NCBI GenBank assembly: GCA_002269645.1
Contig: NIVC01002201.1
Span: 1 to 64,000, forward strand
Length of the DNA: 64,000 nt
Source: Macrostomum lignano
Lineage: Eukaryota
Direction of reading: 5' to 3'
Every line of letters begins with the position of its first letter. Position 1 is the stretch's first letter. Below, piece by piece: positions 3,156 through 64,000 of this stretch. Made by a program: the position numbers and the translations under genes. The notes under the pieces were generated by a model that saw only the letters and a list, made by a program, of their open reading frames with translations, searched no databases and had not been told where the DNA came from.

Positions 3156-6100
3156 CTGGAGGGTGGAGTGGCGAAATAATTTGAGGTATTAGGGATTAAG
3201 CAAGGTCTAATTCAATGCTTCAGTGACTTCCGGTCAGTCTGTGGGTGTTCAACTATAGGCGACAGTCAGTGACTTCCGGTCAGCCTGTGGGTGTTCAACT
3301 ATAGGCGACAGTCAGTGACTTCCGGTCAGCCTGTGGGTGTTCAACTATAGGCGACAGTCAGTGACTTCCGGTCAGTCTGTGGGTGTTCAACTATAGACAA
3401 CAGTCAGTGACTTCCGGTCAGTCTGTGGGTGTTCAACTATAGACAACAGTCAGTGACTTCCGGTCAGTCTGTGGGTGGTCAACTATAGGCTATAGCCAGT
3501 GACATCCGGTCGCTCTCTGTCCCCATTTTTCAAAGATTTCCAATGCTCCAAACACCCGAAACACAAGACCCAAAAAATTACCTGGTCCACTCGATCGCAT
3601 CGTTTCATTGCTGACCAAGCTTGAAGCTTGCCGATGCGCTGGGGAGCTGGCTGAGGGCGCGACGTGTCCGCCGGTGACTCCGCTGTGGACAGCCGGCAAA
3701 CGCCGGGCACGCCGGCCAGCCGCTGACGGACAGCTTCCACCAGCTCGGCCTCATCCGAGGGCGGGCGTCGGCGAAAGCGTGGCCGAAGAAAGTAGCGCGT
3801 CCGCTCCGGCGGCTCCCAGTCGGCAGGACCGACGGCCGCGGTCGGCGAGGCCTCCTCATCAGGCCCAGCGGATGCTGGCTCGACTGTCGGCGCCGGCGGA
3901 AGCGGTGGCGGCGGCAGCTGCAGGACTTCCCGCAGTTCGTCAGTAACCAGCTGGTGAATGCCCACGGCGAAAGCGCGCCCGGCTTTGGCGGCGGCCGCAA
4001 CGACATTGGCGGCAGAAGATCTCCCACCTTCATCGTCCTCCTCTTTGTCTTCGTCCGACTCGACTGACGCAGCGACTGCTGCCGCCGCAGCAACAGCGGA
4101 CGGGTCAAGCGTTGCCATGGCAACTAGGTCTTCAGGCGCCTCGTCGTCTAATTGCTGACCGGAGGACAGGCGGGCCAGCTGGATACGCAGCGAGTGGCCG
4201 GCCAGCTCGGCTACCTCAGCTTCCGAGCTTGGCACAAGCGGCGTCGGAGGTGGCGGCGTCGGGGGCAGCGGCAGAGCCGGCGTTAGCAGACGTGGCAGCG
4301 GTCCCTCGTTGCGATCATCGATGACCAACGATCGCTTTCCAGCTTCGGCAACATCCAGGAGGTCCTCTTCCCACATATCCTCGTCAAGCAGGCCGTGGCT
4401 GCCAACAGCACCTGCTGGTGGACGCGGCGGAATTGGAGGAGCCTGTTGCGGTGTCGGTGCGGTGGTGGCGCATCGATTTTGTCGCCTCAACTGCAGCGCT
4501 TCGTCCAGAGCTCTGCTCAGCAGCTGGTTGGTCAGCTCGTCGCTCAGTTGGTCCGCGCGCAACTCTGAGCGATGCAGCGAGGCCTCCTGAATAGCCGTCT
4601 CCAGCTGCTTATCGCTGGCCTCATCGTCGGCAGGCTCTTTGGCCTCCTTCGATTCCATGAGGTACGGTGGTGGCTTCTCATCGAAGATAAGCTCGTCCTC
4701 TTCGTTTTCATCGTCAAATGGCAGATCCTCGACAATTTCCTCTTCTTCGTCTTTGACTTCGACGTTCGACGGTTCGCGTTTCGCGCTGTCCTGCTCGGAC
4801 GCCGGCTTGTCGCGAGTGGACGGGACCGAGTCGCTGTCGTCGCTGGCCTCGCTGGGTAGGTCAGACATCTCCGATGGGATTGTGCGGGCCGACATTGGCA
4901 CGTCTTCGTCGTCGTCTTCTTCTTCGTCCGCGCCCGCCTGCTCGTTCTGGCCCGGTTTAATCTCCAACGAGGCCGGCTTAGTCGGCGACTTCGGCGGCTG
5001 CTGGGCCGGCCGTTTCTCGTCGTCGCTGTGGAAGCTGTACTCTTCATTAATCTCGGAGAAGTTCACAACGCGAGGAGTACGCGGTGTTCTAGCTGAGGTT
5101 GGTGCATCCTCGTAATCGTCTTTGTAGTCGGCGTCTTCTTCCTCGTCGACTGCGGCTGCTGACGCCGAAGCCTCCTCGGCCTCCTCGTGCCGACGTTGGT
5201 CCGGCTCCGGCTCCGATACGGTGACTTGGCGCGAAGCTGTACGCACGCTGTCGTCTCTCGAGTCCAACACCCGCCTGCGCTGGCTGCTGCCAGAAGAAGT
5301 CGCCGAAGCCGCCGACGGGGAGGCCTCATCGGCTTCGAAATCCTCTGAGTAGGCGCCGGCGCCAGCTGAGTCGCTACTCGGCGGGATGTCCTCCTGAACT
5401 GAGGCGGCGGCGGCGGCGGAGGCGGTGGGTACGACGCGGCGACTGCTGCTGACGGTGGCGGATGAAGACGACTCGGAAGCGGCGGCCTCGATCTCCTCGG
5501 TCATGCTGCTGGCCGAACCTGTCCGGCGGCTTCTGGCCGATGCTCTAGGAGTGGTGGCAGCTGTTGTTGGCAACTGCTCGGACACGGCATCGTCGATCTC
5601 TTCTTCGACGGCTTCAATCACCGAAGCTGTTTGGGTGCGCGGTGACCTCGCCGAAGCTGGAGCCGACGCTGGCGAAGCAGTTGACGATGCTTTGCGAGGC
5701 GAAGCTGCTGAAGTAGCCGTCGATGATTCCGAAGAGGCCGCGGCGGTGCGCCGCGATGCCGCCGAGGCTGCCGACGCTGTTGCCGACTTGGCCGAGCGGC
5801 GGCCGTTCGAAGCCGAGGCCGAAGCCGACGCCGACTCGGACGAAGTCTCGCTAGGTGTCGGCGAACCCTTCGACCGGCGTAAGTCTTTCTCTAAATCGGC
5901 AATGTTTTTATCGTAGGCCTCGATTCGGCGACGCAGTTCCCGTTCCCGCTGACGCAGTTGGTCCTTGGAGACGCGGCTGTGCTCACGTTTCAGTTGTTTG
6001 AGCACATGCTGACGCTCCTGCAACTGGTGACTCAGGGCCTTAATGCGGCTTTCGTATTCGGATACGTCCGTCTCTGCAAAGATGGTAGCCAGATGGTATA

Positions 6101-23137: not shown

Positions 23138-24627
23138 TGTGGCAGCCAGACTATGTGACTGGCAGCACCAGTGCAGCTGCATTGGAACACCCCCTCCAAT
23201 CTCTGTCTAGCTGAAGTGGGATGGGTGCACACCAAGCTAGCTGGCTTGCTAAGCCAAGGGGGTGGCATAGCCTATAATGCCACATCACCTTTTTGCACCT
23301 CCCTAGGCCCCTCAATATTGTGCTATTTTTGTAAATATAAATATATGTGCAAAGCAGGGCAAAATCTTCATTGCCATTCCATCTATTGAAATAAAAAGGC
23401 CTTCTGCCTAATTGGTAAACCTGATGCCCAGTATGAAATGCTGGGCCTACCTGGTTGGCCCTGTGCAGTCCCGGCAGCCAACCACCTTGGCGCTGATTGC
23501 ACCAGCAGCACCACAGCCCAGCAGCACTGCAGCCCAGTAGCACCGCAGCCCAGCAGCCATAGCAATACCCTATGGCCCTATGGCCCAGCAGCCTATGGCC
23601 CAGCCATAGCAGCCATAGTAGGGGTTGTAGCCTAGTAGGGGTTGTAGCCTAGTGGTTAGGGCGTCGGACTCACGACTTGAAGGTCGGGGGTTCGATTCCC
23701 GATCCCTCTGCAACAATTTGTGTCCTTGAGCAAGACACTTAACTCTGCGTTGCTTCAGTTTACCCAGCTGTAAAATGGGTACCAGCATTAGCTGGGGTAA
23801 TTGAGGGTGTGTGTGGCGACCCCCCAGTCCTTGGACTGAACAGCCGTATGCAGCCTTCAGATGCGCCGCGCAATAGCTGCGGCTGAGCTGTCGGTTGCAC
23901 ATCTGCCCATTGGGCAGGTGTAATCAATTATTATTATTATAATACCCTGCAGCACAATGCAGCACATTTGGCCCCCACATTGGACCAACCACTGCCACAC
24001 ACTGCAACTCATTCTAGGCTAGCACTGCACCGCTGTTGCTAGCTTAATGTCCCCAGCCTCTGTGCAGGAGCATCAACCTGGCTCACAGTGGCAACTGACT
24101 GTCGATTGTCTTGGGTGTGGTTGGGCTGCGCTCCTGCTGCCTTTGGTGCCTACCTGGTGCCCTACTGCCTATGGCGCCCGCCTTGCGCCCTTCTGCCTTT
24201 GGTGCCCCTGCTGTCTTTGGCGCCCTGCCATCTTCAGTGCCTTGCTGCCTTTGGCGCCCAGCTAATTTCAGTGCCTGCTCCTCGGCACTCTCGCTGCCTT
24301 CGCTATCAACCAACGTTCAGGGCCTAGCTTGGTTCTAGGGGAAGCTGTGTGGTGGCCAGACTATGCAACCGGCAGCACCAGTGCAGCCGCACTGGAATAC
24401 CCCTCCCAACCTCTGTCTAGCTGAGGTGGGGTGGGTGCGCACCAAGCTAGCTGGCTCGCTAAGCTGGGGGGGGGGGTTGGCATAGCCTATCAGACCCCAC
24501 GCCACCTTTTTGTACCTCCCTAGGCCCTCAATATTGTGCTGTTTATGTAAATATAAATATACATGCAACACAGCGCAAAATCTTTGCTACCATTCCATCT
24601 ATTGAAATAAAAAAGCCTTCTGCCTTG
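23138..24627 (+). mobile_element. Small non-autonomous LTR retroelement (TRIM-like)
   Basis: Direct repeats of about 275 bp at 23138-23411 and 24348-24627 start with TGTGG and contain AATAAA near their ends. TGGT (PBS-like) lies 1 nt after the 5' copy; a purine tract AGGGGAAG precedes the 3' copy. ATAT flanks both ends (4-bp TSD). No recognisable gag/pol inside. Confidence 0.75.
23638..23942 (+). mobile_element. tRNA-derived CORE-SINE nested in the LTR element
   Basis: A box TAGCCTAGTGG (23645-23655) and B box GGTTCGATTCC (23689-23699). The segment TGTGTCCTTGAGCAAGACACTTAACTC...CTGTAAAATGGG (23719-23779) closely follows the MIR/CORE consensus as I recall it. A 3' stem-loop (23899-23921) and a (TTA)n tail follow. 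Confidence 0.85.
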
Positions 24628-31110: not shown

Positions 31111-49763
<18,653 letters not shown>

Positions 49764-52031: not shown

Positions 52032-52852
52032 CAGCTGCTGGGCCAGCCTCTCACATCCTCAGTTTCTGGGCCAGCCTCCCAGATCCTCAGTTGCTGGGCC
52101 AGCCTCCCAGATCCTCAGTTGCTGGGCCAGCCTCCCAGATCCTCAGTTGCTGGGCCAGCCTCCCAGATCCTCAGTTGCTGGGCCAGCCTCCCACATCCTC
52201 AGTTGCTGGGCCAGCCTCCCACATCCTCAGTTGCTGGGCCAGCCTCCCAGATCCTCAGCTGCTGGGCCAGCCTCCCAGATCCTCAGTTGCTGGGCCAGCC
52301 TCCCACATCCTCAGCTGCTGGGCCAGCCTCCCAGATCCTCAGCTGCTGGGCCAGCCTCTCAGATCCTCAGCTGCTGGGCCAGCCTCCCACATCCTCAGTT
52401 TCTGGGCCAGCCTCCCACATCCTCAGTTTCTGGGCCAGCCTCCCACATCCTCAGTTGCTGGGCCAGCCTACCACATCCTCAGTTGCTGGGCCAGCCTCCC
52501 ACATCCTCAGTTTCCTGGCCAGCCTCCCACCTCCTCAGTTGCTGGGCCAGCCTCCCAGATCCTCAGTTGCTGGGCCAGCCTCCCACATCCTCAGTTGCTG
52601 GGCCAGCCTACCACATCCTCAGTTTCTGGGCCAGCCTCCCACATCCTCAGTTGCTGGGCCAGCCTCCCAGATCCTCAGTTGCTGGGCCAGCCTCCCAGAT
52701 CCTCAGTTGCTGGGCCAGCCTCCCAGATCCTCAGTTGCTGGGTCAGCCTCCCAGATCCTCAGCTGCTGGGCCAGCCTCCCACATCCTCAGTTGCTGGGCC
52801 AGCCTCCCAGATCCTCAGTTGCTGGGCCAGCCTCCCAGATCCTCAGCTGCTG
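52032..52852. repeat. 28-bp minisatellite family B, copy 2
   Basis: Same unit as 41485-42245. Confidence 0.96.
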
Positions 52853-53041
52853 GCTCGGTAGCTTGTCTCATTGGTCAGTTGGCATTTAGCCAATTAGAAG
52901 GAGCCTAGAGCACGTTACACACGTGACGCTGCTAAGATAAATAGCCCAACTTTTACGTTAAAGCAGGCAGTTGAAGAAGTCAGTATTAGTCGAACTTCTA
53001 AAAAGAGAAAGAAGCTGTAACGAGCACTCTGAAGCAAAATT

Positions 53042-56000
53042 ATGTCTGATACTTCTAAATATTATTGGCTGTTGTTGCTTTTTCTGCTCGGCATGACTCA
53101 AGCAGCCGAAGCAGCAGCAGCAAATGCCAACGAGGCAGATGTTGTCGGCCAGCTAGACGAGTCGGAGGTCGCAACCGACCAGCGCGTCGTGGCCAGGCGC
53201 ATTCAGATTTTACTGCGCCGAAAGCGCAGCAGCGGCCTCTCATTGCGCGAGCTGAATGACACCTTCGTGCCCAGGGTGCTGGGCGAGCTGCAGTCGCAGG
53301 CGCGCCGATTCCACCTGACCACTTGCGCTGATAGCGAGCGAAACGACGGCGGCGGAGTCTGCGTTCGGTTCAGGGTTGAGTACCCAACTGCCTCTGAGTG
53401 GCGCGGTGAGCTGAACTGCTCTTTGCAAAGTGCTTGCTAGCAGACTTAAATTTCCGCTGGCAAAATTTGTACGCACACTTTAGGGTGTACATGTAGCTTG
53501 AGCACACTTCAGGGAGTACATGTAGGTTGAGCAAACTTCAGGGTGTACATGTAGGTTGAGCACACTTCAGGGTGTACATGTAGGTTGAGCACACTTCAGG
53601 GTGTACATGTAGGTTGAGCACACTTCAGGGTGTACATGTAGGTTGAGCACACTTCAGGGTGTACATGTAGGGTTGAGCACACTTCAGGGTGTACATGTAG
53701 GGTTGAGAGCACAGTTCAGGGTGTGGGATGAGAGCACAGTTAAGGGTGTGGGATGAGAGCAAGTTCAGGGTGTGAAATAAGAGCACAGTTAAGGGTGTGG
53801 GATGAGAGCAAGTTCAGGGTGTGAAATAAGAGCACAGTTAAGGGTGTGGGATGAGAGCAAGTTCAGGGTGTGAAATAAGAGCACAGTTAAGGGTGTGGGA
53901 TGAGAGCACAGTTCAGGGTGTGGGATGAGAGCACAGTTCAGGGTGTGGGATGAGAGCACAGTTCAGGGTGTGGGATGAGAGCACAGTTAAGGGTGTGGGA
54001 TGAGAGCAAGTTCAGGGTGTGAAATAAGAGCACAGTTAAGGGTGTGGGATGAGAGCACAGTTCAGGGTGTGGGATGAGAGCACAGTTCAGGGTGTGGGAT
54101 GAGAGCACAGTTCAGGGTGTGGGATGAGAGCACAGTTCAGGGTGTGGGATGAGAGCACAGTTCAGGGTGTGGGATGAGAGCACAGTTCAGGGTGTGGGAT
54201 GAGAGCACAGTTCAGGGTGTGGGATGAGAGCACAGTTCAGGGTGGTTGGTTTAGGTTAGGGCTTTTGTGTCTCCCTTCATGGTAACTTCAGTAGACTCTG
54301 AAGAGAAGACTCTGAACAAGAAGTTTTTCTAAGTGCAAGAACTCTATCAAATAGGAACTTCATGTTTATTGGTAATTTTGTTAGATTTTTAATTTCTGAA
54401 TTTCGCTACCAATTGGACTGGACTAACCGCTGCCACTTTTCTCAAACAGTCCATATCTCTTCACAAGGTATCAGATTTCCACATGGGTGCCTGCTACCTG
54501 CCCGCCTGCTCGGAATTTGCATTAAATTAGTCAGTGCCTACCTGGCACAGCCTGGCCGCCGTCAGGTGCGGGCGGAGTTGCTTCTTATTTAATTTATTCG
54601 CAATCGGCCACTCTCCAGGCAGTGGCTGCGGTTGAATATTCAAATCATGCCCATCTAATCAAGATAAATAAGTCAGCTGCACTCTTTCGAGCTAGCTGTT
54701 TCCTAGAAAGTGGTTGGTTGCTTCTCAATAAGCGCGTGTGTGCGTTCGAATGTCTTAATCATATTTCAGCGAATAATGGATGCCTTATTTATTAAAAGCA
54801 TAAACTATTATCAGTTTGCAAACCTTTATATTCAATTCTGATGCGCTCCAATGGCGCTAAAATGCGCGTTTAATATGTTCACCACTAGCCAGCAGCCCCT
54901 ATGCATGCAATCCACCCCGACAACAGAGCTGCGGGTGGCCGCTCTGCTGCTGCGGCCGCCGGCCAGCCAGCCGGAGCCGGGCGAACTGCGCGCCTTCGCC
55001 AACCTGGCCGAGGACCGCCTGCGCTCGGTGGAGGGCCTCGACAGCCACTTCGAAGTTACCGCCTTCTGGCGAAACGGCGCCAGCGGCGGTGGCACCGACG
55101 GCGTCACCAAAAATGGCAACGGCAACGGCGGCATCTGGCTCTTCGACTTCGGCGATGGTGGAGGCGGCGGCGGCGGCGGCGGCGGCGGCCCAAGGCTGCT
55201 CAGAGCGGCTTTACCGGCCGCAGCCGCCGCCGCAGCGGCCCTTGCCCTGGCTGGCCTGCTGGCGCGCCATCTGCGGCGCCGGCGCCGACTTCAACAACGC
55301 CGCCTTCAGCAGAGCCGTCGCCGCTGCCGACTATGGAGCGTCGAGACCGCGTCCACCTGGGTTGAAGATGGCGACTCCGGCACCGTCAGGAGCGGCGACT
55401 CCTCCGACTCCGAGGCCGAGCCGCCCAGCCGCCCCATCCGCTTCCGCGGCAGCTCCGACCGGCCGTTCGTTGACGCCTCCGACGCCGCCGCCAAGTTCGC
55501 CAGCCTGGTCGGCCTGCCGCCGCTGGTCGCCCCAGCCGCCGCTACCCCCGACTTCCAGACCGTCGCGAGCCTGGAGCCCTGGTGGCCGCACGGCTTCGCC
55601 CTGGTTTCGGCGAACGCCGAGCCGACGGCTCTTCTGGCCGGACTGTGGGAGGCCAACTGCACCGTGGTGTGCAGCCTGCGGCCCGCGGCCACCGGCCTCG
55701 ACGACAGCGGCGGCGGCCAGTTCCGGCTGTGGGGTCTCCGCGCCTCCTGCCACCCGAGCCACACGCTGCGCTACCTGAGCCTGGCCTGCCTGGACTCCAA
55801 CCTGATGAAGCGCCTCACCCTATGCAGCTTCACCGCCGCCTGGGACCCGGCCTCCGGCCTGCCGCTCGGCCGGGCCAACTTCGTCCGGTTCGGCGTCGCC
55901 TGCGCCGCAGCGCTGGCCGCTGCGCCCGACTCCGCCAGGGCGGCCTTCATCGGCCCTGGGCCCGGGCTGGCCGGCTCCGCCCTGCTGCCAGCCTTCCTGG

Positions 56001-56173
56001 CCGCTGCCGCCGAGGTTCGACGTAGCCGCAGCTGCGACCTGCTCCGGCTGATCGGCCGGCTGCGCAGGCGGTGCCCGGCTGCCGCGGCCGCCGAGCTGGG
56101 ACCCCGGCAGTACGTGTTCCTGCTGGAGTGCCTGCACCTGTACGCCTACCTGCTGCGCCAGAGCGTGCTGTAG
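53042..56173 (+). CDS. Type I membrane protein with a degenerate PTP-like cytoplasmic domain (putative receptor pseudophosphatase), about 536 aa
   Basis: Exon 1 is 53042-53405 (signal peptide YYWLLLLFLLGMTQA, RRKR site, donor G|GTGAGC). Exon 2 is 54927-56173 (acceptor ACAACAG; phases match). Hydrophobic AALPAAAAAAAALALAGLLA is followed by RHLRRRRR. Vestigial PTP motifs follow: LWEANCTVVCSL, FTAAWDPASGLP, LRRR...RQYVFLLECL. Confidence 0.7.
53478..54243. repeat. Compound 29-bp / 25-bp minisatellite in the intron of the PTP-like gene
   Basis: GGGTGTACATGTAGGTTGAGCACACTTCA to about 53700, then GGGTGTGGGATGAGAGCACAGTTCA. Confidence 0.95.
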
Positions 56174-56289: not shown

Positions 56290-59200
56290 CTGGAGGGGAG
56301 ACTGGGAGACTGGGAGAGAGGGAAAATGGGAGAGTGGTAGAGACTGGGAGAGTGAGAGACTGGGAGAGTGGGAGAGTGACTGGGAGAGTGAGAGACTGGG
56401 AGAGTGAGAGACTGGGAGAGTGAGAGACTGGGAGAGTGAGAGACTGGGAGAGTGAGAGACTGGGAGAGTGAGAGACTGGGAGAGTGAGAGACTGGGAGAG
56501 TGAGAGACTGGGAGAGTGAGAGACTGGGAGAGTGAGAGACTGGGAGAGTGAGAGACTGGGAGAGTGAGAGACTGGGAGAGTGAGAGACTGGGAGAGTGAG
56601 AGACTGGGAGAGTGAGAGACTGGGAGAGTGAGAGACTGGGAGAGTGGGAGAGTGACTGGGAGAGTGAGAGACTGGGAGAGTGAGAGACTGGGAGAGGGAG
56701 AGACTGGGAGAGTGAGAGACTGGGAGAGTGGGAGAGTGACTGGGAGAGTGAGAGACTGGGAGAGTGAGACTGGGAGAGTGGGAGACTGGGAGAGTGAGAG
56801 ACTGGGAGAGTGGGAGAGTGAGAGACTGGGAGAGTGAGAGACTGGGAGAGTGAGACACTGAGAGAGTTAGAGTGAGAGACTGGGAGAGTGAGAGACTGGG
56901 AGAGTGAGAGACTGGGAGAGTGAGAGACTGGGAGAGTGAGAGACTGGGAGAGTGGGAGAGTGACTGGGAGAGTGAGAGACTGGGAGAGTGAGAGACTGGG
57001 AGAGTAAGAGACTGGGAGAGTGAGAGACTGGGAGAGTGGGAGAGTGACTGGGAGAGTGGGAGACTGGGAGAGTGAGAGACTGGGAGAGTGAGAGACTGGG
57101 AGAGTGAGAGACTGGGAGAGTGAGAGACTGGGAGAGTGAGAGACTGGGAGAGTGAGAGACTGGGAGAGTGAGAGACTGGGAGAGTGGGAGAGTGACTGGG
57201 AGAGTGAGAGACTGGGAGAGTGGGAGAGTGACTGGGAGAGTGAGAGACTGGGAGAGTGGGAGAGTGACTGGGAGAGTGAGAGACTGGGAGAGTGGGAGAG
57301 TGACTGGGAGAGTAAGGGACTGGGAGAGTGAGACTGGAAGAGTGGGAGACTGGGAGAGTGAGAGACTGGGAGAGTGGGAGAGTGACTGGGAGAGTGAGAG
57401 ACTGGGAGAGTGAGACACTGGGAGAGTTAGAGTGAGAGACTGGGAGAGTGAGAGACTGGGAGAGTGAGACACTGGGAGAGTGAGAGACTGGGAGAGTGGG
57501 AGAGTGACTGGGAGAGTGAGAGACTGGGAGAGTGAGACTGGGAGAGTGGGAGACTGGGAGAGTGAGAGACTGGGAGAGTGGGAGAGTGACTGGGAGAGTG
57601 AGAGACTGGGAGAGTGGGAGAGTGACTGGGAGAGTGAGAGACTGGGAGAGTGAGAGACTGGGAGAGTGAGAGACTGGGAGAGTGAGAGACTGGGAGAGTG
57701 GGAGAGTGACTGGGAGAGTGAGAGACTGGGAGAGTGAGAGACTGGGAGAGTGAGAGACTGGGAGAGTGAGAGACTGGGAGAGTGGGAGAGTGACTGGGAG
57801 AGTGAGAGACTGGGAGAGTGGGAGAGTGACTGGGAGAGTGAGAGACTGGGAGAGTGAGACTGGGAGAGTGGGAGACTGGGAGAGTGAGAGACTGGGAGAG
57901 TGGGAGAGTGACTGGGAGAGTGAGAGACTGGGAGAGTGAGACTGGGAGAGTGGGAGACTGGGAGAGTGAGAGACTGGGAGAGTGGGAGAGTGACTGGGAG
58001 AGTGAGAGACTGGGAGAGTGAGAGACTGGGAGAGTGAGACACTGGGAGAGTTAGAGTGAGAGACTGGGAGAGTGAGAGACTGGGAGAGTGGGAGAGTGAC
58101 TGGGAGAGTGAGAGACTGGGAGAGTGAGACTGGGAGAGTGGGAGACTGGGAGAGTGAGAGACTGGGAGAGTGGGAGAGTGACTGGGAGAGTGAGAGACTG
58201 GGAGAGTGAGAGACTGGGAGAGTGAGACACTGGAAGAGTTAGAGTGAGAGACTGGGAGAGTGAGAGACTGGGAGAGTGAGACACTGGGAGAGTGAGAGAC
58301 TGGGAGAGTGGGAGAGTGACTGGGAGAGTGAGAGACTGGGAGAGTGAGACTGGGAGAGTGGGAGACTGGGAGAGTGAGAGACTGGGAGAGTGGGAGAGTG
58401 ACTGGGAGAGTGAGATACTGGGAGAGTGGGAGAGTGACTGGGAGAGTGAGATACTGGGAGAGTGGGAGAGTGACTGGGAGAGTGAGAGACTGGGAGAGTG
58501 AGACACTGGGAGAGTGAGAGACTGGGAGAGTGGGAGAGTGACTGGGAGAGTGAGAGACTGGGAGAGTGAGAGACTGGGAGAGTGAGACACTGGGAGAGTT
58601 AGAGTGAGAGACTGGGAGAGTGAGAGACTGGGAGAGTGAGACACTGGGAGAGTGAGAGACTGGGAGAGTGGGAGAGTGACTGGGAGAGTGAGAGACTGGG
58701 AGAGTGAGACTGGAGAGTGGGAGACTGGGAGAGTGAGAGACTGGGAGAGTGGGAGAGTGACTGGGAGAGTGAGAGACTGGGAGAGTGAGAGACTGGGAGA
58801 GTGGGAGAGTGACTGGGAGAGTGAGAGACTGGGAGAGTGAGACACTGGGAGAGTGAGACACTGGGAGAGTGAGAGACTGGGAGAGTGGGAGAGTGACTGG
58901 GAGAGTGAGAGACTGGGAGAGTGAGACTGGGAGAGTGGGAGACTGGGAGAGTGAGAGACTGGGAGAGTGAGACACTGGGAGAGTGAGAGACTGGGAGAGA
59001 GACTGGGAGAGTTAGAGTGAGAGACTGGGAGAGAGACTGGGAGACTGGGAGAGTGAGACACTGGGAGAGTGAGAGACTGGGAGAGTGGGAGAGTGGGAGA
59101 GTGAGACACTGGGAGAGTGAGAGACTGGGAGAGTGACTGGGAGAGTGAGAGACTGGGAGAGTGAGAGACTGGGAGAGTGAGAGACTGGGAGAGTGGGAGA

Positions 59201-62200
59201 GTGACTGGGAGAGTGGGAGAGACTGGGAGAGAGTGGGAGAGTGGGAGAGACTGGGAGAGTGAGAGACTGGGAGAGAGACTGGGAGAGTGGGAGACTGAGA
59301 GAATGAGACTGGGAGAGAGACTGGGAGACTGGGAGAGAGAGTGGGAGTGGGAGAGTGGGAGACTGGGAGAGAGTGGGAGTGGGAGAGTGGGAGACTGGGA
59401 GAGAGTGGGAGTGGGAGAGTGGGAGACTGGGAGAGTGAGACACTGGAAGAGTTAGAGTGAGAGACTGGGAGAGTGAGAGACTGGGAGAGTGAGACACTGG
59501 GAGAGTGAGAGACTGGGAGAGTGGGAGAGTGACTGGGAGAGTGAGAGACTGGGAGAGTGAGACTGGGAGAGTGGGAGACTGGGAGAGTGAGAGACTGGGA
59601 GAGTGGGAGAGTGACTGGGAGAGTGAGAGACTGGGAGAGTGGGAGAGTGACTGGGAGAGTGAGAGACTGGGAGAGTGAGACACTGGGAGAGTGAGAGACT
59701 GGGAGAGTGGGAGAGTAACTGGGAGAGTGAGACTGGGAGAGTGGGAGACTGGGAGAGTGAGAGACTGGGAGAGTGGGAGAGTGACTGGGAGAGTGAGAGA
59801 CTGGGAGAGTGAGACTGGGAGAGTGGGAGACTGGGAGAGTGAGAGACTGGGAGAGTGGGAGAGTGACTGGGAGAGTGAGAGACTGGGAGAGTGAGAGACT
59901 GGGAGAGTGAGACACTGGGAGAGTTAGAGTGAGAGACTGGGAGAGTGAGAGACTGGGAGAGTGGGAGAGTGACTGGGAGAGTGAGAGACTGGGAGAGTGA
60001 GACTGGGAGAGTGGGAGACTGGGAGAGTGAGAGACTGGGAGAGTGAGAGACTGGGAGAGTGAGAGACTGGGAGAGTGAGAGACTGGGAGAGTGAGAGACT
60101 GGGAGAGTGGGAGAGTGACTGGGAGAGTGAGAGACTGGGAGAGTGAGACACTGGAAGAGTTAGAGTGAGAGACTGGGAGAGTGAGAGACTGGGAGAGTGA
60201 GACACTGGGAGAGTGAGAGACTGGGAGAGTGGGAGAGTGACTGGGAGAGTGAGAGACTGGGAGAGTGAGACTGGGAGAGTGAGAGACTGGGAGAGTGGGA
60301 GAGTGACTGGGAGAGTGAGAGACTGGGAGAGTGAGAGACTGGGAGAGTGAGACACTGGGAGAGTGAGAGACTGGGAGAGTGGGAGAGTGACTGGGAGAGT
60401 GAGAGACTGGGAGAGTGAGACTGGGAGAGTGGGAGACTGGGAGAGTGAGAGACTGGGAGAGTGGGAGAGTGACTGGGAGAGTGAGAGACTGGGAGAGTGA
60501 GACTGGGAGAGTGGGAGACTGGGAGAGTGAGAGACTGGGAGAGTGAGACACTGGGAGAGTTAGAGTGAGAGACTGGGAGAGTGAGACACTGGGAGAGTGA
60601 GAGACTGGGAGAGTGGGAGAGTGACTGGGAGAGTGAGAGACTGGGAGAGTGAGACTGGGAGAGTGGGAGACTGGGAGAGTGAGAGACTGGGAGAGTGAGA
60701 CACTGGAGAGTGAGAGACTGGGAGAGAGACTGGGAGAGTTAGAGTGAGAGACTGGGAGAGAGACTGGGAGAGTGAGAGACTGGAGAGTGAGACACTGGGA
60801 GAGTGAGACACTGGGAGAGTGAGAGACTGGGAGAGTGGGAGAGTGGGAGAGTGAGACACTGGGAGAGTGAGAGACTGGGAGAGTGACTGGGAGAGTGAGA
60901 GACTGGGAGAGTGAGAGACTGGAGAGTGGGAGACTGGGAGAGTGAGAGACTGGGAGAGTGGGAGAGTGACTGGGAGAGTGAGAGACTGGGAGAGTGGGAG
61001 AGTGACTGGGAGAGTGAGAGACTGGGAGAGTGAGACTGGGAGAGTGGGAGACTGGGAGAGTGAGAGACTGGGAGAGTGAGACACTGGGAGAGTTAGAGTG
61101 AGAGACTGGGAGAGTGAGACACTGGGAGAGTGAGAGACTGGGAGAGTGGGAGAGTGACTGGGAGAGTGAGAGACTGGGAGAGTGAGACTGGGAGAGTGGG
61201 AGACTGGGAGAGTGAGAGACTGGAGAGTGAGACACTGGGAGAGTGAGAGACTGGGAGAGAGACTGGGAGAGTTAGAGTGAGAGACTGGGAGAGAGACTGG
61301 GAGAGTGAGAGACTGGGAGAGTGAGACACTGGGAGAGTGAGACACTGGGAGAGTGAGAGACTGGGAGAGTGGGAGAGTGGGAGAGTGAGACACTGGGAGA
61401 GTGAGAGACTGGGAGAGTGACTGGGAGAGTGAGAGACTGGGAGAGTGAGAGACTGGGAGAGTGAGAGACTGGGAGAGTGGGAGAGTGACTGGGAGAGTGG
61501 GAGAGACTGGGAGAGAGTGGGAGAGTGGGAGAGACTGGGAGAGTGAGAGACTGGGAGAGAGACTGGGAGAGTGGGAGACTGAGAGAATGAGACTGGGAGA
61601 GAGACTGGGAGACTGGGAGAGAGAGTGGGGGAGTGGGAGACTGAGAGAATGAGACTGGGAGAGAGACTGGGAGACTGGGAGAGAGAGTGGGAGAGTGGGA
61701 GACTGAGAGAATGAGACTGGGAGAGAGACTGGGAGAGTGAGAGACTGGGAGAGTGAGAGACTGGGAGAGTGAGAGACTGGGAGAGTGAGAGACTGGGAGA
61801 GTGAGAGACTGGGAGAGTGGGAGAGTGACTGGGAGAGTGAGAGACTGGGAGAGTGAGAGACTGGGAGAGTGAGAGACTGGGAGAGTGAGAGACTGGGAGA
61901 GTGGGAGAGTGACTGGGAGAGTGAGAGACTGGGAGAGTGAGACTGGGAGAGTGGGAGACTGGGAGAGTGAGAGACTGGAGAGTGGGAGAGTGAGAGACTG
62001 GGAGAGTGAGAGACTGGGAGAGTGAGACACTGAGAGAGTTAGAGTGAGAGACTGGGAGAGTGAGAGACTGGGAGAGTGAGAGACTGGGAGAGTGAGAGAC
62101 TGGGAGAGTGAGAGACTGGGAGAGTGAGAGACTGGGAGAGTGGGAGAGTGACTGGGAGAGTGAGAGACTGGGAGAGTGAGAGACTGGGAGAGTAAGAGAC

Positions 62201-64000
62201 TGGGAGAGTGAGAGACTGGGAGAGTGGGAGAGTGACTGGGAGAGTGGGAGACTGGGAGAGTGAGAGACTGGGAGAGTGAGAGACTGGGAGAGTGAGAGAC
62301 TGGGAGAGTGAGAGACTGGGAGAGTGAGAGACTGGGAGAGTGAGAGACTGGGAGAGTGAGAGACTGGGAGAGTGGGAGAGTGACTGGGAGAGTGAGAGAC
62401 TGGGAGAGTGGGAGAGTGACTGGGAGAGTGAGAGACTGGGAGAGTGGGAGAGTGACTGGGAGAGTGAGAGACTGGGAAAGTGGGAGAGTGACTGGGAGAG
62501 TGAGAGACTGGGAGAGTGAGACTGGAAGAGTGGGAGACTGGGAGAGTGAGAGACTGGGAGAGTGGGAGAGTGACTGGGAGAGTGAGAGACTGGGAGAGTG
62601 AGACACTGGGAGAGTTAGAGTGAGAGACTGGGAGAGTGAGAGACTGGGAGAGTGAGACACTGGGAGAGTGAGAGACTGGGAGAGTGGGAGAGTGACTGGG
62701 AGAGTGAGAGACTGGGAGAGTGAGACTGGGAGAGTGGGAGACTGGGAGAGTGAGAGACTGGGAGAGTGGGAGAGTGACTGGGAGAGTGAGAGACTGGGAG
62801 AGTGAGAGACTGGGAGAGTGAGAGACTGGGAGAGTGAGAGACTGGGAGAGTGAGAGACTGGGAGAGTGAGAGACTGGAGAGTGGGAGAGTGACTGGAGAG
62901 TGAGAGACTGGGAGAGTGAGAGACTGGGAGAGTGAGAGACTGGGAGAGTGAGAGACTGGGAGAGTGGGAGAGTGACTGGGAGAGTGAGAGACTGGGAGAG
63001 TGGGAGAGTGACTGGGAGAGTGAGAGACTGGGAGAGTGAGACTGGGAGAGTGGGAGACTGGGAGAGTGAGAGACTGGGAGAGTGGGAGAGTGACTGGGAG
63101 AGTGAGAGACTGGGAGAGTGAGACTGGGAGAGTGGGAGACTGGGAGAGTGAGAGACTGGGAGAGTGGGAGAGTGACTGGGAGAGTGAGAGACTGGGAGAG
63201 TGAGAGACTGGGAGAGTGAGACACTGGGAGAGTTAGAGTGAGAGACTGGAGAGTGAGAGACTGGGAGAGTGGGAGAGTGACTGGGAGAGTGAGAGACTGG
63301 GAGAGTGAGACTGGGAGAGTGGGAGACTGGGAGAGTGAGAGACTGGGAGAGTGGGAGAGTGACTGGGAGAGTGAGAGACTGGGAGAGTGAGAGACTGGGA
63401 GAGTGAGACACTGGAAGAGTTAGAGTGAGAGACTGGGAGAGTGAGAGACTGGGAGAGTGAGACACTGGGAGAGTGAGAGACTGGGAGAGTGGGAGAGTGA
63501 CTGGGAGAGTGAGAGACTGGGAGAGTGAGACTGGGAGAGTGGGAGACTGGAGAGTGAGAGACTGGGAGAGTGGGAGAGTGACTGGGAGAGTGAGATACTG
63601 GGAGAGTGGGAGAGTGACTGGGAGAGTGAGATACTGGGAGAGTGGGAGAGTGACTGGGAGAGTGAGAGACTGGGAGAGTGAGACACTGGGAGAGTGAGAG
63701 ACTGGGAGAGTGGGAGAGTGACTGGGAGAGTGAGAGACTGGGAGAGTGAGAGACTGGGAGAGTGAGACACTGGGAGAGTTAGAGTGAGAGACTGGGAGAG
63801 TGAGAGACTGGGAGAGTGAGACACTGGGAGAGTGAGAGACTGGGAGAGTGGGAGAGTGACTGGGAGAGTGAGAGACTGGGAGAGTGAGACTGGGAGAGTG
63901 GGAGACTGGGAGAGTGAGAGACTGGGAGAGTGGGAGAGTGACTGGGAGAGTGAGAGACTGGGAGAGTGAGAGACTGGGAGAGTGGGAGAGTGACTGGGAG
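56290..64000. repeat. Purine-rich ~16-bp satellite, >7.7 kb, running off the window
   Basis: Unit GAGACTGGGAGAGTGA with many variants (GGGAGAGTGACT, GACACTG, GAGTTAGAG). Confidence 0.98.

Follow-up and report, generated by a model that had tools for sequence, protein, structure and literature searches.

A two-exon flatworm gene encoding a probable relic of a receptor tyrosine phosphatase domain without its catalytic residues

Does the predicted gene at positions 53042-56173 (+) of a 64,000-nucleotide stretch of DNA (contig NIVC01002201.1, positions 1 to 64,000; the whole stretch is referred to below as the window) encode a receptor whose cytoplasmic part descends from a protein tyrosine phosphatase (PTP), and what could such a domain still do if its active site has been erased? 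A sequence-only reading of this DNA had proposed an orphan-like receptor pseudophosphatase. Our analysis indicates, with a probability of about three in four, a real two-exon gene for a fast-evolving, catalytically dead relic of a receptor PTP that has so far been found only in Macrostomum-like flatworms. The product would be a type I membrane protein that begins with a signal peptide, continues with a fast-evolving ectodomain of ~185 amino acids and crosses the membrane in one transmembrane (TM) helix. A basic juxtamembrane stretch, an acidic Ser-rich one and a C-terminal PTP-derived domain of ~250 amino acids would follow.

The predicted product (hereafter the window protein) has one detectable relative. 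A phmmer scan of 1.84 billion representative proteins returned exactly one match, Macrostomum lignano PAA79041.1 (E 1.3e-17), with 35% identity over the C-terminal half, and a search with PAA79041.1 as the query returned only M. lignano copies. The match is the product of BOX15_Mlig019222g3, which has the near-identical copies g1 and g2 (PAA82043.1 and PAA82040.1). The proposed lineage restriction was borne out by this single homologous cluster among the representatives searched. Orphan status had to be given up, as the homologue is already deposited and, though uncharacterised, bears the automatic name 'Tyrosine-protein phosphatase domain-containing protein' (UniRef A0A267FZ41 and A0A267G7N4), which is presumably PROSITE-based. 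A separate homologue search, limited to 8000 candidates, found none with the full window protein, whose poly-Gly, poly-Ala and poly-Arg words probably filled that limit, and none when the query was a two-row alignment masked with X. Searches of the literature and of supplements yielded nothing relevant on Mlig019222, on flatworm PTPRN or on tyrosine phosphatases of Macrostomum, and no expression or functional data. In a full-length alignment the window protein and PAA79041.1 share the same order of signal peptide, ectodomain, TM segment and cytoplasmic part. Overall identity is 33-35%; it is 38-43% in the C-terminal 250 residues versus 24-30% in the ectodomain, TM and juxtamembrane parts. The family as sampled here comprises only two effectively independent sequences.

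The part most conserved with respect to M. lignano (55427-56170, +; amino acids 289-536) was compared by hhalign with a reference profile of six classical PTP domains (PTP1B, IA-2, SHP2, LAR-D1, CD45-D1 and phogrin). Against this profile the family scored 35.9 (P 2e-4) over 178 collinear columns, and a second hhalign implementation gave 34.4 (P 3.5e-4). The 178 columns cover motifs M5-M10, from the DFWxMVWE helix to the end of helix alpha6, and the alignment ends at the C-terminus of the PTP domain and of the protein alike. The observed score was reached by none of 300 column shuffles (mean 13.4 +/- 2.5, maximum 25.3) and by none of 240 shuffles of blocks of 20 and 40 columns (mean 23-26, maximum 29.0); the reversed sequence scored 12.9. 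Block shuffles preserve local motifs and destroy their order; the real score, being higher, therefore draws both on the best single match and on several matches standing in the right order. The window sequence alone scored 22.1 over 160 collinear columns, more than any of 100 shuffles, and the M. lignano sequence alone 21.7 over 41 columns, below the top shuffle (23.0); the single-sequence P-values were 0.024 and 0.028. Combining the two diverged members raised the score from 22 to 36, as true homology predicts. With an unfiltered PTP hidden Markov model (HMM), the window protein scored -0.2 bits, with its best local match at the WPD region (rank 6 of 1000 against shuffles), and the M. lignano protein 0.6 bits, with its best local match at the Q-loop/alpha6 region (rank 1 of 1000). 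All of the PTP motif remnants quoted in the sequence-only reading were present, and the collinear alignment, which scored above every shuffle, supports the order claimed for them. We consider it quite probable, if unproven, that the cytoplasmic part descends from a classical PTP domain.

Several observations weigh against this conclusion. Pfam hmmscan at E<=10 gave no PF00102 match for the window protein (full length, cytoplasmic part or ectodomain) or for the three M. lignano copies. Of the degenerate PTP domain that had been proposed, the profile-profile similarity (P 2-3.5e-4, above the nulls) and the UniRef name of the relative stand, and recognition by Pfam does not. Searches of the PDB with phmmer and hmmsearch, using single sequences and the family alignment, gave no PTP, only low-complexity and TM noise. 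The hhalign probability was 46% for the score of 35.9 and 37% for the score of 34.4, which makes the match a weak one by this measure. Of the six reference sequences, PTP1B, IA-2, LAR and CD45 were confirmed in the PDB; SHP2 and phogrin were not among the PDB matches listed. AlphaFold2 models reached a predicted local distance difference test (pLDDT) of 42.3 from the single sequence and 39.5 from a 4-row alignment, which makes them unusable, and a Foldseek search of the PDB with the first low-confidence model returned nothing at E<=0.001. The order of secondary-structure elements in the low-confidence model was strands, alpha3, alpha4, alpha5 and alpha6, which we take to be compatible with the topology of PTP1B. 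The N-terminal third of the PTP domain (alpha1'/alpha2', KNRY, DYINAS) lies outside every statistical alignment. By eye only, the conserved (I/T)RFR..D..VD (amino acids 292-304) could match NRY....(Y/F)D, and DFQTVAS could match DYINAS. Among the three M. lignano copies, the ratio of nonsynonymous to synonymous substitution rates (dN/dS) was 0.67-0.90, with 11-24 differences, too few to show constraint.

An alternative is a real membrane protein with a cytoplasmic domain unrelated to PTPs, the likeness arising from a composition rich in Ala, Gly, Leu and Arg together with alpha/beta periodicity. A sequence match in neither Pfam nor the PDB, hhalign probabilities below 50%, the modest single-sequence P-values and the unusable models are all points in its favour. 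However, the column-shuffle, block-shuffle and reversal controls keep composition and, in part, periodicity, and none attains the observed score. The run of collinear columns to both C-termini, the rise in score when the two diverged members are combined and the independent automatic assignment of a PTP domain to PAA79041.1 likewise argue against an unrelated domain, which we regard as unlikely.

If the cytoplasmic part is a PTP relic, its active site has been lost. The WPD-loop relic (SFTAAWDPASGLP; 55826-55864, +) contains the best local match to the PTP HMM in the window protein. Here hhalign pairs PASGLP with PDFGVP; the position of the WPD Asp (Asp181) is occupied by Ala or absent, and P..G.P is retained (WDPASGLP). 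The loop is unconserved in M. lignano (GGLSRSPDSSP). The P-loop relic (AAFIGPGPGLAGS; 55940-55978, +) was aligned by hhalign without gaps to VVHCSAGIGRSGT, with the window sequence alone. His214 is replaced by Phe, Cys215 by Ile and Arg221 by Leu, and Gly218, Gly220 and Gly223 (GxGxxG) are retained. Only these three Gly are left of the signature (I/V)HCxxGxGR(S/T)G; M. lignano has AAI-GRGLSEAS, in which the G.GL of the relic is conserved. The best-conserved block of the family is the alpha5/Q-loop/alpha6 relic (CDLLRL..LRRRCP..RQYVF..CLHLYAYLL; 56033-56155, +), which aligns to VDI..V..R.QR..MVQT..QY.F of PTPs. In the Q-loop, Ala stands in place of Gln262; the window protein retains Gln266 (RQYVF), where M. 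lignano has His (AHYLF). No lost catalytic residue is restored in M. lignano. The blocks common to the two proteins are CLDSNL.KR, FVRF..AC, G.GL, SCDLLRL...LRR.CP and Y.F..CLH.YA.LL.

The earlier description of an erased active site was thus upheld by hhalign, by which Cys, Arg and the WPD Asp are gone. Because the nucleophilic Cys, the general-acid Asp and the phosphate-clamping Arg have all been lost, catalysis is excluded on the evidence of the alignment, and the predicted domain should be unable to dephosphorylate. Judging from the established PTP mechanism, it probably holds no phosphate. Of the two functions that had been suggested for the dead domain, a phospho-ligand trap is unlikely, since the lost residues include the Arg that would bind phosphate; we infer that a scaffold role is the better reading. 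The PTP-derived domain would lack its Cys nucleophile, this Arg, the general acid of the WPD loop and Gln262. Conservation would be highest in the strands that precede the WPD loop, in helices alpha3, alpha5 and alpha6 and in the glycines that form the P-loop skeleton. Conservation of these structural blocks suggests that the fold has been retained as a non-catalytic interaction or scaffold module on a membrane anchor. The gene evolves much faster than its neighbour and seems to have been pushed to very high GC content (0.88 at third codon positions, GC3) in the window lineage. High GC favours Ala, Gly, Arg and Pro in the protein and probably contributed to the loss of the motifs. A more specific proposal combines these elements: a receptor family confined to macrostomids, with a sole PTP domain devoid of catalytic and phosphate-binding residues, would have been kept open and conserved in fold and would serve purely as a membrane-anchored scaffold, its runaway divergence driven by GC-biased substitution. 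We offer it tentatively, with the odds somewhat against it.

A dead receptor PTP family could also be the 'missing' IA-2 of macrostomid worms. On this account, the window protein would be an extremely diverged flatworm orthologue of IA-2/PTPRN that acts in secretory-granule biogenesis or trafficking. Like IA-2 and phogrin (PTPRN and PTPRN2), the R8 receptor pseudophosphatases of dense-core secretory vesicles, it would be a type I receptor with a single TM segment and one C-terminal PTP-type domain that lacks normal activity. The window protein has a dibasic RRKR in its ectodomain. It has been noted that IA-2 and IA-2beta are themselves pseudophosphatases (PMC2638020). By eye there is some likeness of WEANCTV to WESGCTV and of LRRQCP to VRDQRP. 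However, hhalign against the individual PTPs gave 27.2 for LAR, 25.4 for CD45, 24.4 for IA-2, 23.0 for phogrin, 20.9 for SHP2 and 17.9 for PTP1B. Subfamily assignment by this route was rejected, there being no preference for IA-2 or phogrin over LAR or CD45. The ectodomain scored 9.6 by hhalign against the mature ectodomain of IA-2 (2qt7, a confirmed reference), no better than the null of 10.5 +/- 1.95, and Pfam found no RESP18 or Receptor_IA-2 match in the window protein. The affinity to IA-2 and phogrin that had been suggested is therefore not supported by either part of the protein. The dibasic site is found in the window protein only (PAA79041.1 lacks it), and its cleavage is putative. IA-2 retains HCx5R, including the Cys and Arg of the P-loop, and a recognisable PF00102; the window protein retains neither. 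Other marks of IA-2 are a RESP18 homology domain and an ectodomain of the SEA-like type; neither was detected in the window protein. The human IA-2 ectodomain comprises roughly 550 amino acids, compared with ~185 in the window protein. Orthology to IA-2 thus seems improbable.

Other phosphatase folds without activity offer closer or more distant parallels to such a relic. The D2 domains of tandem receptor PTPs (RPTPs) keep classical PTP folds without catalysis, and regulatory or scaffold roles have been proposed for them (PMC2638020). D2 domains are easily recognised by sequence and for the most part retain the Cys and Arg of the P-loop; those of tandem RPTPs adjoin a D1 domain. The same recognisability and mostly intact P-loop are found in PTPRU, which reportedly keeps the classical PTP fold without catalysis and for which a regulatory or scaffold role is said to have been proposed. 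The window protein, by contrast, has no PTP domain besides the dead one, which is too eroded for Pfam to detect. STYX/MK-STYX and the PTP-like C. elegans proteins EGG-3/4/5, likened to the window protein here by description only, also have phosphatase folds in which catalytic residues are substituted, and they work through binding instead of catalysis. STYX proteins have a dual-specificity fold, are cytosolic and usually keep the phosphate-binding Arg; EGG-3/4/5 differ in not being type I receptors.

As a class, pseudophosphatases are well accepted, and most are easily recognised, with the phosphate-binding pocket kept. The window protein would be an extreme variant of a receptor pseudophosphatase, in which the sole PTP domain is below Pfam detection and Cys, Arg and Asp are lost. 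It would mark how far the PTP fold can erode while the gene remains open in two diverged lineages, and it is a concrete case for asking what role a PTP fold has when it can neither catalyse nor bind phosphate. If the proposal of a macrostomid-restricted scaffold family is true, few classical PTP domains that remain under selection would, to our knowledge, be as degenerate as this one. RNA interference and transgenesis exist in M. lignano, which makes Mlig019222 directly testable. The practical importance is modest, as only two lineages are concerned and the homologue is already public with an automatic PTP label.

The reading of the protein depends on the gene model. Exon 1 (53042-53405, +; 364 nt) encodes amino acids 1-121, with the signal peptide and the N-terminal ectodomain, and supplies the first base of codon 122. 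It starts with the ATG at 53042, with in-frame stops upstream, and ends at the donor G|GTGAGC (53405|53406). The phase-1 intron (53406-54926, +; 1521 nt) consists for about half its length of tandem repeats, in arrays with units of 29 bp (53473-53724) and 25 bp (53700-54244). Exon 2 (54927-56173, +; 1247 nt) follows the acceptor caacAG (54925-54926) and encodes amino acids 122-536, comprising the membrane-proximal ectodomain, the TM segment and the entire cytoplasmic part, up to the stop codon TAG at 56171-56173. The predicted spliced ORF (open reading frame) of 364 + 1247 nt is divisible by 3 and gives 536 amino acids and a stop. The splice sites, phases and length (~536 amino acids) given in the sequence-only reading all checked out, the junction itself being a prediction from the sequence. 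Inspection of the stop-free stretch in the exon 2 frame upstream of 54927 gave no alternative phase-1-compatible acceptor. A phase-0 GTTGAG donor after codon 112 (53377|53378), combined with a NAGNAG acceptor at 54929, was set aside as less likely, since the donor is weaker and the phase is unlike that of the PAA79041.1 intron.

GC contents at the three codon positions are 0.74/0.60/0.88 in exon 2 and 0.64/0.46/0.67 in exon 1, where the overall GC content is 0.59 versus 0.42 in the flank; GC content is 39-43% in the flanks and in the non-repetitive intron sequence. A stop-free run of 440 codons was attained in only 0.4% of shuffles. By these measures exon 2 is clearly coding. The exon 1 peptide is not significantly more similar to the M. 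lignano N-terminus than shuffled sequences are (639 of 2000 reach its score, p ~0.3), and for the membrane-proximal ectodomain the similarity is marginal (p ~0.04). The predicted junction 53405|54927 therefore rests on the splice signals, the need for a signal peptide and the intron of the same phase in the M. lignano PAA79041.1 gene. A wrong gene model or a decaying locus, in which exon 1 would be foreign or exon 2 a chance GC-rich frame or a pseudogene, could draw on the dissimilar exon 1 peptide, on the dN/dS near 0.7-0.9 between the M. lignano copies and on the several overlapping ORFs of 100-230 amino acids in the other frames of exon 2. Such ORFs are, however, an expected by-product of 74% GC, and the difference between GC3 (0.88) and GC2 (0.60) singles out one frame. 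The length of the open run, an intact frame whose full length is homologous to an M. lignano gene that is based on transcripts and lies in a syntenic position, the intron phase common to both genes and a type I topology that needs a signal peptide such as exon 1 supplies also argue against a faulty model or a decaying locus, and we consider this explanation very improbable.

The gene models of M. lignano were derived from RNA-seq data assembled with the genome as a guide (PMC5730564). The Mlig019222 gene has three exons in all three copies. Its intron 1 is in phase 1, as is the window intron, and the two positions lie 9 aligned residues apart. Its intron 2 falls within a Gln-rich juxtamembrane insert with no counterpart in the window protein, and one 1051-nt exon codes for the cytoplasmic part from 21 residues past the TM segment, with the whole PTP-like region included. 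In both genes a GC3 gradient rises from 5' to 3'. At both loci an ankyrin-repeat gene (Pfam Ank_2, E 3e-11) lies 7-9 kb upstream of the pseudophosphatase gene, at 41222-43602 (+) in the window and at 697-2998 in M. lignano contig L001, with five collinear tblastx segments that are 63-76% identical. It is absent from the called genes listed for the M. lignano contig. On the grounds of the common intron phase, GC3 gradient and ankyrin synteny, the two loci are orthologous or anciently paralogous. The window protein itself is not in the collection searched, and the window would thus probably stem from another macrostomid or from a segment without annotation. A processed retrocopy (intronless and at a new locus), which had been raised as a possible origin of the uninterrupted TM-plus-PTP exon, is disfavoured because the window gene keeps a 1521-nt phase-1 intron, matching Mlig019222 intron 1 in phase and nearly in position, and shares its upstream ankyrin gene with Mlig019222.

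PAA79041.1 lacks the same catalytic residues as the window protein. It differs in having more ectodomain Cys and N-glycosylation sequons, a GC3 of 0.75 versus 0.88, the second intron and the Gln-rich insert, and in lacking RRKR and the poly-Gly stretch. A further UniRef entry, A0A1I8HQZ0 (870 amino acids, 'Protein kinase domain-containing protein'), is a chimeric model in which the pseudophosphatase is fused to downstream sequence. Its 90% cluster also holds V-ATPase subunit C entries; the likely cause is read-through or wrong joining of gene models in an older assembly of M. lignano.

All of the features listed for the ectodomain and membrane region in the sequence-only reading were located. 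A signal-peptide-like segment (MSDTSKYYWLLLLFLLGMTQAAEA; 53042-53113, +; amino acids 1-24) can be read from the sequence, and PAA79041.1 likewise begins with a hydrophobic leader. The RRKR dibasic (furin-type) motif lies at 53216-53227 (+; amino acids 59-62). In the full-length alignment PAA79041.1 has ECPSQH there, and the proposed furin processing is not supported. An NDT sequon is found at amino acids 72-74, and the ectodomain cysteines are Cys95 and Cys107. The poly-Gly stretch GDG11P (55151-55192, +; amino acids 197-210) is encoded by a (GGC)n microsatellite and is missing in PAA79041.1 in the same alignment. The Ala/Leu-rich TM segment (LLRAALPAAAAAAAALALAGLLA; 55196-55264, +; amino acids 212-234; Kyte-Doolittle peak 2.03) aligns with a clear TM helix of PAA79041.1 (peak 2.73). 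It is followed by a basic juxtamembrane stop-transfer stretch (RHLRRRRRLQQRRLQQSRRRCR; 55265-55330, +) that includes RHLRRRRR; the counterpart in PAA79041.1 is KRQRVKEQQRQQQQQ. The only Pfam match of the ectodomain was a chance-level one to DUF7122 (E 0.21). Residues with GC-rich codons dominate the window protein (Ala 15.5%, Leu 13.6%, Arg 10.6%, Gly 9.7%), which also has poly-Gly, poly-Ala (within the TM segment) and poly-Arg runs that PAA79041.1 lacks. Composition and homopolymer runs together suggest GC-biased drift and microsatellite expansion in the window lineage.

The gene is bordered by repeats on both sides. It has been reported that 15% of the M. lignano genome consists of simple and tandem repeats (PMC5730564), which matches the repeat-rich window. 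Upstream, a 28-bp tandem array (52032-52853; 29 copies, 94% matches) ends 190 bp before the ATG and, being free of stops in three + frames, yields spurious ORFs of 250-300 amino acids. In the unique 190 bp between array and ATG, a CCAAT (52890-52894), a putative E-box overlapping a cAMP response element (CRE) half-site (CACGTGACG; 52920-52928) and a TATA-like sequence (GATAAATAG; 52936-52944) were noted by eye. Downstream, a ~7.7-kb tandem array of GGGAGAGT (56296-63992; periods 8/16/32 bp) begins 120 bp past the stop codon and takes up the rest of the window. Its GC skew is ~+0.77, and it contains long spurious minus-strand ORFs (SLSQSLTLPVSHSP repeats). An Rfam scan of the window gave only a tRNA-Val (anticodon CAC; 23637-23711, +), far upstream in the AT-rich middle of the window, on which ARAGORN agrees. 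At 3483-6023 (-), 846 stop-free codons with 63% GC would encode a low-complexity protein rich in Ser, Ala, Glu and Pro, for which Pfam gave no match; this stretch may be an exon of a large disordered protein. A 643-amino-acid ORF at 37654-39585 (-) is made up wholly of tandem repeats (TVTTGS and LHCHYR units) and is almost certainly satellite DNA, not a gene.

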